Positions 13,691-48,920 of a stretch of 64,000 nt of DNA are shown piece after piece. Source of the DNA: Gracilinanus agilis (taxonomy: Eukaryota); assembly GCF_016433145.1 (NCBI RefSeq), contig NC_058132.1, positions 251,306,911-251,370,910 on the forward strand, given 5' to 3'. The position numbers and the translations under genes are program-made. The notes beneath the pieces were generated by a model. It had not been told where the DNA came from. It was given only the letters and a program-made list of their open reading frames with translations, and did no database searches. Within the stretch, counting starts at the first letter, position 1. Each line of letters opens with the position of its first letter.

Positions 13691-13887
13691 GGGGGCAGCT
13701 GGGTAGCTCAGTGGAGTGAGAGTCAGGCCTAGAGACAGGAGGTCCTAGGTTCAAACCCGGCCTCAGCCACTTCCCAGCTGTGTGACCCTGGGCAAGTCAC
13801 TTAACCCCCATTGCCCACCCTTACCAATCTTCCACCTATGAGACAATACTCCGAAGTACAAGGGTTAAAAAAAAAATTATTAAAAAA
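13691..13887 (+). mobile_element. Young SINE-1 (didelphid type) inserted in L1 ORF2
   Basis: Intact A box (TAGCTCAGTGG), B box (GGTTCAAACCC), A-tail and a 13-bp TSD AAAAG(C/T)GATAAGA at a TT/AAAA site. Confidence 0.93.
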
Positions 13888-19921: not shown

Positions 19922-20101
19922 NNNNNNNNNNNNNNNNNNNNNNNNNNNNNNNNNNNNNNNNNNNNNNNNNNNNNNNNNNNNNNNNNNNNNNNNNNNNNNN
20001 NNNNNNNNNNNNNNNNNNNNNNNNNNNNNNNNNNNNNNNNNNNNNNNNNNNNNNNNNNNNNNNNNNNNNNNNNNNNNNNNNNNNNNNNNNNNNNNNNNNN
20101 N
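19922..20101. other. Assembly gap (180 N)
   Basis: Run of N. Confidence 1.
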
Positions 20102-22545: not shown

Positions 22546-22566
22546 GGGGCACTTAAGATTTTATTA

Positions 22567-22723
22567 TATCTGCTAATCCTATTTAGAGTGATCAATAGAT
22601 TTGAGGGTTTATTGTTTAGCCTTGGAACAAACCTACTAATTCTATCTGCTAATCCTATTTAGAGTGATCAATGGATTTGAGGGTTTATTGTTTAGCCTTG
22701 GAACAAACCTACTAATTCTATCT
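22567..22723. repeat. 76-bp tandem duplication (2 copies, 1 mismatch)
   Basis: Units start at 22567 and 22643. A third TATCT at 22719 closes the period. Confidence 0.95.
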
Positions 22724-37879: not shown

Positions 37880-38916
37880 CTGAAAAGGAAAAAAAAGATT
37901 ACAAAATTCTAAGGCTCTACCTAAGTGTCAAAATCAATTTAGGTCAGCAAATGAAGATCACAGTAAAACACATCAAACTGTTTATAGTATTTTCCTGTTT
38001 CCTTCTGTAATACAATCACAGATAATGTTCATAGGCCCCTTCAAAATTTGAAATGTTAATAAATACTAAATGTGGAAAGGAGGTGCTACTGAAATATTTG
38101 AAAACATAACCATTTACTAATACTGCATATAACTGGGGAATGTGCCAAACTGAGATGAGAAAATTTACTCTGAAAACTGTATTATTTCCATTTTGCCTAA
38201 GATTTTTTCCTTTGATAGTGGCACTACAAAGGATTTTTGAGGGTTTATTTCTTAGAGATTTGCAGATAAAGTGAGATCTGGAGGAGTGATATTAATAGAT
38301 TAATTTTAAAACATGAAAAACAATAACTAAACTGAACCAGAGGACTTGTTTTTTAAGTGCTGAATGTTAAAATGAAAAGACAATGTTTAAACTGTATCTG
38401 ACTCATTCACTTTTTTTTACATGTATCTAACCCCTTGTGGGTTAGATACATGTAAAGATTAGAGTATGCAATTTAAGTTTTCTGAGTGTAGATAGAATTA
38501 TGAGTAGAGCTGATCAAGTAACAACAAAAAAAAATATTAAGTTTTCATCAACACCTATAAAATTCCAAAAGTCTAAGCTAAGGGAACAGAATAAGAACCA
38601 GGGAGAAGAAACCAATACTAAGTGGCACAGTGGATAAAAATGTTGGACTTGGAGGAGTGAGGAAATCCTGAGTTCAAATCCTGCCTCAGACCTTTATTAG
38701 CTCTGTGTGACCCTGGGCAAGACACTCAGGATCAATTTTTTCAGCTGTGAAAATGAGGATATGTTGTGAAGATCAAATGAAATAACCTGTGCATAGTGCT
38801 TTGCAAACCTTAAAGTGTTACATAAATTCTAGTTTTTCTATTATATATATATATCATATATATATGTATATATATGTAAATTCTATTATTATTATAAAAG
38901 AACTACAGCTATTCCC

Positions 38917-39022
38917 ACTACTACTACCTGTACTACTACTACTATTACTACTACTGCCGCCGCTGCCACGGCTACTACTGCTACTACTACTACTACTGTT
39001 ACTGCTACTGCTACTGCTACTA
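38917..39022. repeat. Interrupted trinucleotide tract (CTA/CTG/CCG)
   Basis: Read directly. It explains the poly-Ser and poly-Leu ORFs in the track. Confidence 0.9.
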
Positions 39023-39264
39023 GCAGCTAGGTGACATAATGGATAGAGTGCTGGACGTGGACTCAAGAAGAGGATTCTTCTTGAGTTCAAATTTGGCCTT
39101 GACGATTATTAGCTGTGTGACCCTGGGAATGTATGCCTCAGTTTCCCCATCTATAAAATGAGCTAGAGAAGGAAATGGAAAAGTACTCCAGTATTTTTGC
39201 CAAGAAAACCTCCAAAATGGGGTCATGTAGAGTGGGACACAATTAAGTGAAACAATTACAACAA
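39023..39264 (+). mobile_element. MAR1-type SINE
   Basis: gcagctaggtgacataatggatag head, CORE, RTE-like tail; CTACTAG on both sides. Confidence 0.82.
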
Positions 39265-43010: not shown

Positions 43011-44045
43011 TCCAAGACTACAGATTGCAGAAAAGTAAGTATATGCATTGGTAGAGAGGATTTAGCATTCCTAGAACTAGCAATTATGCAGGGATTCAAG
43101 GTGCACAAAGCAAGTTGCACAAGTTACGTCATTAACAACAATCCCAAGAGGTCAGTGCAATTATTATCCCATCATACAGATAAGGAAACAAAGGATAAGA
43201 GATGTTGAGTGACTTGCCCCTGGTCACAAAACCAATAAGGGTCTGAGGCAGGATTCAAATTCAGGTTTTCCTGACTCCCAGTCTAACAGTATTATACACG
43301 GAGTCACCTAGCTAGCTGCCTTCTAGGTTTAATAACAAGAAGTTTCTTACACCAAATAGAATCACTAGTCCATAGCTTCCCAGAAAAAAAAATAATAAAA
43401 GAATACCACAGTGAAGTCATTACCTATAAGGAAACTCTCCCCCCAAAGCCCCAAATACAAAAAAAGCCTAATTTAGAAAGAGGTTTATTGATATAAAGAA
43501 GAAAGGCAGAAAGAAATCTACCTTTGGATATAAGGCAGTCTCTGAGCTATCTCATCTTTAAAAATTACTTCTCTAAACTACATCAGAATGAAGGTAAAAT
43601 ATAATCAAAGACCTTCAAAAAGCTATAGCTAATTTTTTTTATTGGAGTGTAATGGGGGAGTGTATGTGAAGGAGATTAACTATAGCCCTATAAATTAATA
43701 AATTATACCAAGAAACCTTGGTACATCAAGAGAAGGAAAAGAATCAAAGAATTCTAAGGGGTCCAGAAAACACATAAAATTAAAAATCATGTTATACTAT
43801 TCTTTATAAAATGGCAGTCATGTTCTGCAAAAGCAATAATAGCTTTTTAAAAAAATCATTTGTTAGAACAATTTTGTGATATCATATTGCTTGCCCTCTC
43901 AATGGGTGGAGGACCAGTGAGAGGGAAGGAGAGAATTGGGAACTCAAAATTTCAAAAAAATTAATATTAAAGGAAAACATTTTTTAAAATGTTAAAAAAG
44001 GAGAGTGTAAGAATTTAGGAGTGCAAATTAGGTGTATTTCTAAGA

Positions 44046-44262
44046 CATGAATTGTTTACCTTTTTTTGGTGCTATGGCCCTCTTTCAGCAATCTGGAGAA
44101 GCCTATGATATAATAGCTTGTTTTTTAAAATTAAAAATACTAAACTTTAATTAGAGATTAATTAAAGATATAATTTTTCCCATCCAATTTCACAAACCAC
44201 ATCCTGAAATCTATTCATGGAACCCCTTAGGAATTTAAGGACCTTAAGATAAGAATCACTGT
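44046..44262 (+). mobile_element. hAT-type MITE, copy 2 (217 bp)
   Basis: Perfect 8-bp TSD TTCTAAGA (44038-44045, 44263-44270) and degenerate CAGGGGTTCTTAACC-like TIRs. Confidence 0.85.
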
Positions 44263-44426
44263 TCTAAGATGAGTTAATATGAGGATATTTTTTTCTTATA
44301 GAGAATGGAATAAAATATAATGTCTTTGGCTGCCTTCCATTGTCTTCTGCTTAATTGGGCAGAGCAGAAGAGATAAGCTGTTGGAAATATTTAAAGAAGG
44401 CACCAGACTGTAGAAAAGCATCAAAT

Positions 44427-44630
44427 CAAGAATTTTTAACCTGGGGTCCATGGATGGATTTGGAGGGCTGTGAACTTGGATGGAAAAAATTACATCTTTA
44501 TTTCACTGTAATTGGTTTCCTTTGTAAATTCATATGTTTTACCTTATGAATTAAAAAAATACTATTCTGAGGAGGGATCTATACATTTCACTGGACTGCC
44601 AAAGGGATCCATGACACACGCAAAAAAGAA
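44427..44630 (-). mobile_element. hAT-type MITE, copy 3 (inverted)
   Basis: Reverse complement aligns with copies 1 and 2 (tgtgtcatggatccctttggcag; aaagatgtaattttttccatccaagttcaca). Confidence 0.75.
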
Positions 44631-47201
44631 AGGGAGAATTTATATCTTAGAAACAGGGGTGGGAGGGAGGGAAAATGTTTTTAAATTATTAATTTCTTGT
44701 TGAATAAGAAGGTTTTGAAAAGAGGTAGGGTTAATGAAAATCATATCAAAAAAGAAAAAATAACACTGATGAATCATTTAAAAAATAGAAAAAGAGCAAA
44801 AGAAAATGCAGAAGGGGATCCACAAGCAAAGCAGTGTTTACTATGCAAAATTTGAAAAACATAGGTTTTAAAAGTTGTATGTAATGGAGATTCACAAATT
44901 CACATGTGGTCCTCTTTTTTTCTGTCTTTTGAATGTGAAATTGTTCATATTTGTTAAGTTTGTAGTAATAAAAAAAGAAAATTAAAAAAAAAGAAACATT
45001 TCATTTACAAGGAGACTAACATGTGCCCTCATTATCTCTTTTTTTTTTCTGTACATCTTATTAATGCTCTACTTACAGGTTTTTTACAAGTTTAGGAATT
45101 ATTCTTATTAGATAGGGTATTCTGCCTTAGAGATACCACTCAAGTAAGACTCCATCTCACATAAGGGTGTATTTAGTTGGGTTGTTTCAGGAGCCACCAA
45201 TTAGATTCCTCCAGATACTTGATTTATAAAAGAAAAACTTCAGTGTTAAAAGTTGAGTTCTGAAGTTGCCAGTCTGATTGAGCAAAGAGAAAGGGAGGAT
45301 TATAAAATAGAAACATTGTCTCTCAAAAGTAAGTGTGCTACAATGTCTAGAATAGTGCTAAGGAAAATACTATTGTAGACATTGTAGCACATTTAACTTT
45401 TTTTCTCTTTTGTGTATCTAAGGACTGGAGGAATAGAATCTGCAGCTCCAGAAACAACTTGGGGCAGAGGTCCTTAGGGTATTGCTGTGGATGAAATCCA
45501 GTAAAGGTAGCCTGGGAGGGAGAGATCAGTCAGGTAGGAGGAGAAGCAGAAGACATTACTATCATGAAAACCTCGGGAGAAAAATATCAAGAAGATAAGG
45601 GTGATCAGCACTGACAAGTGCTGAAGAGAGGTCAAGAAGGATGAGGACCAAGAAAAGCACATCAGATTTAGCAATTAAGAGGTCACTTTGGGGAGAACAG
45701 CTTCAGTTAAATGACTGGAGTTGAAAGTCAGATTTCAGAGGAAAGCTTATAACTAAGTTTTTCTTCATCAGAGTTCTCCCTAGAGTAGTTTATCTGGATC
45801 TCTCCTTTTCCTCTCTTATATTTGACACTGTATTATGCTCATTCTTGTTTATGTCATCATCCCCTAAACTTTTTGAAGAAAAAGGTTGTCATTTTTGTAC
45901 TCCTGGTGCTTAGCACAGTTTCTCACATAAGAAGTACTCAATAAATATGTTGAATTGAAATGAAGTGGCCCCCTGAATAACTCTTACTATCCACATTCTC
46001 CATTTTGATACTAGAACTTTGCTTCACTGATTGGTACATTCAGTGAAATCATGGAATTCTCAGAGGATCAAAGGGGTCCATAAACCTGCTAGCCTAGATC
46101 CTGCAGAAAGGCCTGCAAGGATCAAAGCATACCATTTTCCACTTTATTTACTTCTATTCTTTTTTAATATCTTCTTCCTCAACGGCAAATATGTAAATAT
46201 GTTTTGTATGATAGCATCTGTGTAGCCTATATCAAATTGCTTACAATTTCAAGGAGAGGAGGAAGGGAGAGAATTCAGAATTCAAAATGGCAGAAATGAA
46301 TGCTAAATATTATTTTTACATGTAACTAGAAAAAAATAAAATAGTACTGAGAGAAAAAAAAAGATGGGCTGCAAGGCTTTGTTTTCAGCAGTGTGGAAAT
46401 GTATGTTAGGAGTGTGTGGATTCGAACAGTCAGGGATGCCATCAGAAGCTTTCTAATACTTTCATGAATTCAGTCAACAATAGTCATGATATCTAAAAGC
46501 ATGGCTATGATCCTCAGGGGGAATTTCAAATCTTTTGTCAGGAGACATGTCCTTCTACCTCTGTAATCAGGGATGCTTGAGAGAAGTCAAAGGACAGAAG
46601 GATCCTGGAGCCCAGGGAGCTGAAATGAAACAAGAAGATCTCTAACAGGGAAGGTACAAGCTTCTGTTGGTCATGTAGGAATTATAATGAGAACTAAAGC
46701 AGGCATGGAACAGAAACATCCTAGCTGAGAAAGGACAAAAGCCTCTCTCCCTACCTACACTCCTTCTACTTTCCATTTCCAATTCCTAAATGCTACCACG
46801 GCACAGTGGGGCTTTGAACATAACTTCAAAGGAGGCACCACTGCAGTGAAGCATTGAGATTCTTGTTGACATGTTCTGAAAACCAGAAAAAGTTCTGTGG
46901 GAAAGAAGGTGTTACAAGTACATCAGTATCTGATGGGCTAGCATTCATGTGTATTCTCTGGACTTGGGAATATGTGACTATGAGTAAGTCACCTAAATGT
47001 TCTCATTCTTGGTGTCAACATCTGTAAAACAGGCGTAATAACATTTGCACCACCTATAGGTGAGTTGTGAGGAGAGCATTCTGTTAAAAATTTTCATGAT
47101 TACTATTTTTACAAATGAACTACTTTGATCAGCAACATTACTAAGGACTCATTGCCATTTATTCTTTCAAGATGGAGAACATAACCAAGGAGAGACCATA
47201 C

Positions 47202-48675: not shown

Positions 48676-48920
48676 GGGGCAGCTGGGTAGCTCAGTGGAG
48701 TGAGAGTCAGGCCTAGAGACAAGAGGTCCTAGGTTCAAACCCGGCCTCAGCCACTTCCCAGCTGTGTGACCCTGGGCAAGTCACTTGACCCCCATTGCCC
48801 ACCCTTACCAATCTTCCACCTATGAGACAATGCACCGAAGTATAAGGGTTTAAAAAAAATACTAGAAAATATATGAATAAAAGGGCCTTTCCTCAAAATA
48901 ATAAACTTATTTTAAAAAAA
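48676..48920 (+). mobile_element. Young SINE-1 with 3' extension inside the TSD
   Basis: Body 48676-48859 differs from the 13691 copy at ~5 positions. 13-bp TSD AAAAGTTGATTAT at 48663-48675 and 48921-48933. Confidence 0.93.

Follow-up and report, generated by a model that had tools for sequence, protein, structure and literature searches.

Does a precursor-microRNA-sized fold-back in an intron of DCAF17 mark a microRNA gene, or is it a structure of another kind, and how did it come to lie there? We addressed these questions in a window of 64,000 nucleotides from Gracilinanus agilis, the window being the whole stretch of DNA that was analysed. Positions are those of its forward strand throughout. 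The fold-back in question is a hairpin at 45325-45401, made of two arms and a 12-nt loop with a stem of about 32-33 bp, and its parts are as follows:

45325-45356: left (inner) arm of the hairpin, 32 nt
45357-45368: loop of the hairpin, 12 nt
45369-45401: right (inner) arm of the hairpin, 33 nt

The original prediction had placed the arms and the loop at exactly these positions. The right arm is identical to the reverse complement of the left arm at 30 of 32 positions, with 2 mismatches and one 1-nt indel. When a 117-nt stretch was folded, the minimum free energy (MFE) was -44.7 kcal/mol for the plus strand (z -8.53) and -37.4 kcal/mol for the minus strand, which is the host strand (z -6.84); 0 of 200 shuffles were as good in either case. 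The stem has 32 pairs on the plus strand. On the minus strand it spans 33 nt with 30 pairs, one bulge and two 1x1 mismatches, and the MFE fold of that strand closes two weak pairs within the 12-nt loop. The arms differ by a single transition, which the antisense strand accommodates as a G-U pair; on the host strand it gives A·C, a mismatch. The 22-nt core of the arm was found at two sites only in the 64-kb window (0.00 expected by chance), and the hairpin, with a G+C content of 30%, is the best short-range inverted repeat of the window when low-complexity repeats are set aside. The fold-back is real, of pre-microRNA size, and far beyond what chance would produce.

The host gene was mapped with ten public DCAF17 proteins from marsupials, aligned to the 64-kb window by tblastn; exons were located singly and not joined into a model. 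Thirteen coding blocks were found on the minus strand, running from about 63.1 kb down to 34.4 kb, with the best overall identity to the Monodelphis domestica protein. Two of these blocks enclose the hairpin:

47304-47203, minus strand: DCAF17 coding exon upstream of the hairpin intron (8th block), amino acids 256-289 of the Monodelphis domestica protein
42597-42433, minus strand: DCAF17 coding exon downstream of the hairpin intron (9th block), amino acids about 290-338

The position between the 8th and 9th coding blocks confirms the location in DCAF17 intron 8 that had been predicted. The nearest DCAF17 exons are about 1.8 kb and 2.7 kb away, and the minus-strand hairpin is in sense orientation in this intron. 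Intronic DNA of DCAF17 also holds a second comparable hairpin of pre-miRNA size (38404-38468; 30-nt arms, 83% complementary, 5-nt loop) and an imperfect trinucleotide array of the CTA/CTG type (38903-39027) that yields long serine- or valine-rich open frames. Elsewhere in the window, we noted a 76-nt unit duplicated in tandem (22563-22714; 97% identity between the copies), a run of 180 N that is either a gap or masked sequence (19922-20101), and two SINE copies (13692-13875 and 48676-48859) that are 97% identical, far closer than the other SINE copies of the window, and that therefore belong to a young family.

The hairpin does not stand alone. It is the apex of a decayed, imperfect palindrome of about 280 bp, the other parts of which are:

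45181-45237: outer left arm of the palindrome, 57 nt
45238-45324: spacer on the left side only, 87 nt, with no counterpart on the right side
45402-45458: outer right arm of the palindrome, directly adjoining the inner right arm

The outer arms are complementary at 41 of 57 positions (72%), and their local alignment score was 42, compared to 16.5 ± 2.0 for 1000 shuffles, the shuffle maximum being 27. A 341-nt fold had a z score of -9.2; in it, the 5' flank of the hairpin (45402-45458) pairs with 45181-45237, and the 3' flank forms an 87-nt, partly structured internal loop. The flanks had been described as apparently unstructured, which is not what we found, the hairpin being nested between these outer arms. 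The 87-nt spacer may be either an insertion in the left arm or the trace of a deletion in the right arm. At its left edge, 45236-45243 and 45260-45267 (AACTTCAG / CTGAAGTT) form a perfect 8-bp stem with a 16-nt loop.

Arm identity is not uniform along the palindrome. The inner arms match at 30 of 32 positions and the outer arms at 41 of 57 (Fisher p 0.014), and this better match of the inner arms suggests that the apex is younger than the rest, or that it has been re-homogenised. Just past the outer right arm, at 45459-45461, the window reads TTG, and two related organisms (B and D, below) both read CCA. The CCA would extend the outer palindrome by 3 pairs, so the TTG of the window looks derived.

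Relatives were compared from contigs only, and none of the runs that contain the stretch was recorded as RNA. The contigs that bear on the hairpin are these:

Run X19, organism C: 45101-45540 in one 789-nt contig, with no differences from the window (100% identical); this run may be the source of the window
Run X1, organism A: 45099-45378, with 6 substitutions, the last at 45308, and an 11-nt deletion at 45179
Run X5, organism B: stops at 45349 and resumes at 45427; the left part carries the same 6 changes and the same deletion as organism A
Run X20, organism D: two 151-nt records at depth 2, one of which joins 45356 via 24 other letters to 45413

Divergence between the organisms was 4-6%. The full right arm is seen only in X19, because the contigs of organisms A and B stop in or beside the hairpin (at 45378 in A; at 45349, resuming at 45427, in B). 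The organism B contigs end just before 45350, the G that takes part in the stem's G·G (C·C) mismatch; this gap could be due to a polymorphism at 45350, to a divergent hairpin, or to a filter. For organism A, no change is listed at 45309-45378, a span that includes the whole left arm, all of the loop and the first part of the right arm. These zero differences across 70 nt, where about 2.8 would be expected at approximately 4% divergence, are not significant, and up to four changes may be hidden because changes near a contig end go unlisted. A protein search with a 66-aa spurious open reading frame adjoining the hairpin, aimed at contigs of the relatives, gave no candidate.

Organism D differs in the hairpin itself. 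In one of its 151-nt contigs, at depth 2, positions 45357-45385 are missing, namely the loop and the inner 17 nt of the right arm, and the 24 joining letters correspond to 45386-45412 with small indels. The left flank of organism D has 3 differences in 151 nt and does not have the 11-nt deletion; it looks closer to the window than that of organism A. Two further features follow from this short form:

45357-45385: 29-nt block without counterpart in the organism D contig, made of the loop and an inverted copy of 45340-45356
45340-45356: source segment of the inverted copy, a quasi-palindrome centred on TCTAGA at 45346-45351

Reverse-complemented, 45340-45356 agrees with 45369-45385 at 16 of 17 positions, and the 12-nt loop has no match to neighbouring sequence beyond a 7-mer. 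The source segment is itself self-complementary (7 of 8 pairs, with one bulge), a level reached by 1.4% of shuffles and by 0.7% of the 17-mers in the window, and this is as expected if TCTAGA was the older centre. With the 29 nt taken out, the sequence becomes a near-perfect palindrome that runs from TCTAGA through GTGCTAC/GTAGCAC into the outer arms. For folding, the short form was rebuilt from the window and the 24 letters of the organism D contig. The minus strand gave -30.8 kcal/mol for the short form compared to -53.3 kcal/mol for the form in the window, and the plus strand gave -36.3 compared to -64.0 kcal/mol. This difference corresponds to the sharp drop in free energy described for template-switch hairpins (PMC10710096).

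On balance, these data favor the view that the hairpin is a by-product of DNA copying, left when an inverted duplication of the template-switch type rebuilt an old palindrome's apex, and that it now sits passively in DCAF17 intron 8. The sequence of events would have been as follows. An old palindrome of about 280 bp, with its original centre at TCTAGA (45346-45351), would have been present in the intron and would since have decayed to the 72% seen in its outer arms. In the lineage that led to the window's species and to one relative or more, 29 nt would then have been added just to the right of this centre, made up of a 12-nt spacer and of the neighbouring 17 nt copied as their reverse complement. 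With this addition the axis of symmetry would have shifted and the stem would have grown from roughly 8-11 bp to about 32 bp; the arms would later have gained two substitutions and one indel. The most likely mechanism would be polymerase template switching, as quasi-palindrome extension or correction, for which the existing GTGCTAC/GTAGCAC inverted repeat is a possible landing microhomology. The hairpin would be transcribed only within the host pre-mRNA and would most likely be degraded with the intron.

Template switching during replication is an established route to inverted copies of this sort, and it includes the correction and extension of imperfect inverted repeats (PMC10710096; PMC13100816). 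PMC10710096 works with two criteria, an inverted fragment of at least 15 nt and a steep fall in free energy, and both are seen here, with an inverted copy of at least 15 nt taken from adjacent sequence. However, a single switch with two jumps does not explain the whole difference between the two forms, the 12-nt loop having no neighbouring copy. With this loop unexplained, the case would fall in the 'partial' class of PMC10710096, which holds events with at least 10 nt that the switch does not account for. Because 3 differences already separate the inner arms, the event was not very recent and could predate the split from organism D. We infer that the 29 nt were gained, a gain appearing about twice as likely as a loss in organism D. 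What weighs against this reading is that the short form is one 151-nt contig at depth 2 and may be a secondary deletion in organism D, with 2-nt microhomology (GT) at its borders.

The alternative built on such a deletion is that the long hairpin is ancestral, born with the whole palindrome as one inverted duplication, and that the short form of organism D arose later by deletion in an unstable palindrome; the better-matched apex would then be due to chance or to repeated correction from arm to arm. With 3 differences in 32 places, the inner arms have diverged about as much as the organisms have from each other (4-6%), or more, and the hairpin may therefore predate the split of the organisms. 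The deleted block is flanked by GT on both sides, and the closer-looking left flank of organism D, relative to organism A, also fits. However, such a deletion would need to have taken out the loop and the inverted copy and nothing else, and to have left behind a near-perfect palindrome on TCTAGA, which is already self-complementary in the left arm of the window. The significant difference in identity between inner and outer arms (p 0.014) is a further point against it, and we consider this alternative possible but unlikely.

The whole of 45181-45458 could also be what is left of a non-autonomous, palindromic DNA transposon (MITE) with the hairpin at its centre. Many mammalian miRNAs come from MITE-type elements, an example being miR-548 from MADE1. 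The long inverted arms are significantly similar, and the total size of about 280 bp is typical for MITEs. Copy number argues to the contrary. Sensitive blastn with 44500-46500 found no second copy in the 64-kb window, only the self-inverted match, and in the genome-sized run X19 of organism C (approximately 3.2 billion letters of contigs) one contig was found at a likeness of at least 85%, the range of copies that this search reaches. The stretch is single-copy at that likeness; copies of an old family that have diverged below 85% may exist. The original prediction had called for a check of copy number, with a high-copy palindromic MITE as the outcome that would speak against a microRNA; blastn and run X19 gave no such outcome, because the stretch is single-copy at 85% likeness or more. 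Moreover, we saw no clear target-site duplication beside 45181 or 45458, where the arms are old and their ends ill-defined, and arm identity is unequal between the inner and outer parts. A MITE relic is thus an improbable source for this palindrome. Some small runs (3-143 million letters) also carried the stretch. This might be taken to point to many copies or to expression, a reading that we rejected; because the search selected runs that contain the stretch, their size says nothing on either point. An exact scan of metagenome contigs for the hairpin arm returned no match.

Two roles for the hairpin as RNA were also weighed against its being a passive by-product of copying. In one, the near-perfect 30-bp duplex would act as a substrate for ADAR editing or would influence the splicing of intron 8. 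In its favor, both strands give a long duplex with almost perfect pairing. However, the nearest exons are about 1.8 kb and 2.7 kb off, there is no conservation evidence, and duplexes of this kind are common, the window having a second one at 38404-38468. Judged from the sequence, this role is very improbable.

In the other, the hairpin would be a genuine young, lineage-restricted intronic miRNA, with Drosha cutting the stem of approximately 33 bp from the DCAF17 pre-mRNA and Dicer giving products of approximately 22 nt from both arms. Among the features by which miRNA genes are recognised, at least 16 complementary nt between the arms together with a stem near 35 bp are present, as is an apical loop of about 10 nt or more (12 nt, 45357-45368); the stem of about 33 bp and its loop are near the preferred 35 bp and at least 10 nt. 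The orientation is sense in the intron of an expressed host, and organism A has no listed change in the left arm and loop. It is also documented that new miRNAs can arise from template-switch hairpins, for the most part in sense introns (PMC10710096).

Against this stand several observations. On the host strand, no basal UG and no apical UGU/GUG was found (basal junction GAAAAAAA; loop AUUUUCCUUAGC). A downstream CNNC had been reported as absent, and it is indeed absent at the canonical offset, the nearest one lying 27-28 nt past the base of the stem. These motifs aid processing and are not obligatory. The 5' flank pairs into the outer palindrome, the fold on the host strand is weaker than the antisense fold, and the transition between the arms is an A·C on the host strand. 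The G+C content of 30% counts as against or neutral. A search of the whole window with Rfam 15 gave no match at the gathering score, in agreement with the earlier view that this is not a known miRNA. The matches at E up to 10 were all below threshold and hairpin-shaped, namely the plant family MIR5200, the best of them (27 bits, where 70 are required), and mir-9457 (17, where 90 are required), and were rejected as chance. One arm had been thought to resemble the L2 3' tail, from which miR-28 and miR-151 derive; this resemblance found no support, since a search of 44000-47000 with Rfam models hit neither mir-28 nor mir-151 at E up to 10. Predictions of bacterial promoters and terminators were disregarded, as the locus is a mammalian intron.

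Searched in DNA and in RNA letters, the 22-nt arm core was in the main text of no paper in a full-text search. In a relative there is a short and nearly hairpin-less form, known from the one contig of organism D, and the unchanged 70 nt of organism A are not significant at about 4% divergence. The base rate is also low: among primate template-switch hairpins that lie in genes and have a suitable size, 0.9% (57 of 6,054) are annotated as miRNAs (PMC10710096). Taken together, this indirect evidence leans against miRNA status, and we regard a young miRNA processed from both arms as extremely unlikely. The same grade, the lowest that we give, applies to the fuller version of the idea, that of a marsupial miRNA gene that a single template-switch step created where an old palindrome had its centre, that DCAF17 intron 8 would express and that only a few close opossum species would have, with the pre-hairpin form surviving in a relative.

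The structure is therefore best described, with somewhat better than even confidence, as ordinary in kind, a single-copy intronic fold-back that inverted copying produced at an older palindrome's apex. If this reading is right, the locus adds one more to the many neutral hairpins that replication errors leave in introns, which are raw material for miRNAs and are not themselves miRNAs. It would serve as a modest worked example outside primates and mice, in which the old centre, the inverted copy and a possible pre-event form are all visible, and it could help to test how often, and in which direction, template-switch events occur in the genomes of marsupials. Only small-RNA reads with precise Drosha and Dicer cuts would give the locus greater weight.

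Template switching at quasi-palindromes has a classical model in bacteria. Three groups of known systems can be set beside the locus. The miRNAs derived from a MITE (miR-548, from MADE1) and from the L2 tail (miR-28 and miR-151) resemble it in that intronic palindromic DNA gave rise to a hairpin of pre-miRNA size. In contrast to these hairpins, the present one is single-copy at 85% likeness or more and has no target-site duplication that we could see, and it has no Rfam match to mir-548, mir-28 or mir-151 at E up to 10. The second group is quasi-palindrome correction and extension (PMC13100816). There, as here, an imperfect inverted repeat has a centre far better matched than its outer parts, and a short inverted repeat (here GTGCTAC/GTAGCAC) is usable as the point of the switch; however, the addition of 29 nt and the shifted axis go beyond a mere correction of mismatches.

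The third group is formed by the template-switch hairpins of Monttinen, Frilander and Loytynoja (2023, PMC10710096), such as hsa-mir-4713, hsa-mir-576 and mmu-mir-3086. Those hairpins share with ours an inverted copy of at least 15 nt of adjacent sequence, a stable stem that appears suddenly when compared to a related sequence, sense orientation in a host intron, and a few mismatches gained since the event. Unlike the miRNAs of that study, the present locus offers the hairpin stage alone, read from DNA, and either of its two forms could be the parental one. Twelve loop nucleotides are left over here, as in the 'partial' class of that study. Finally, whereas their events took place on unstructured sequence, the event proposed for DCAF17 intron 8 would have taken place on a palindrome that already existed.
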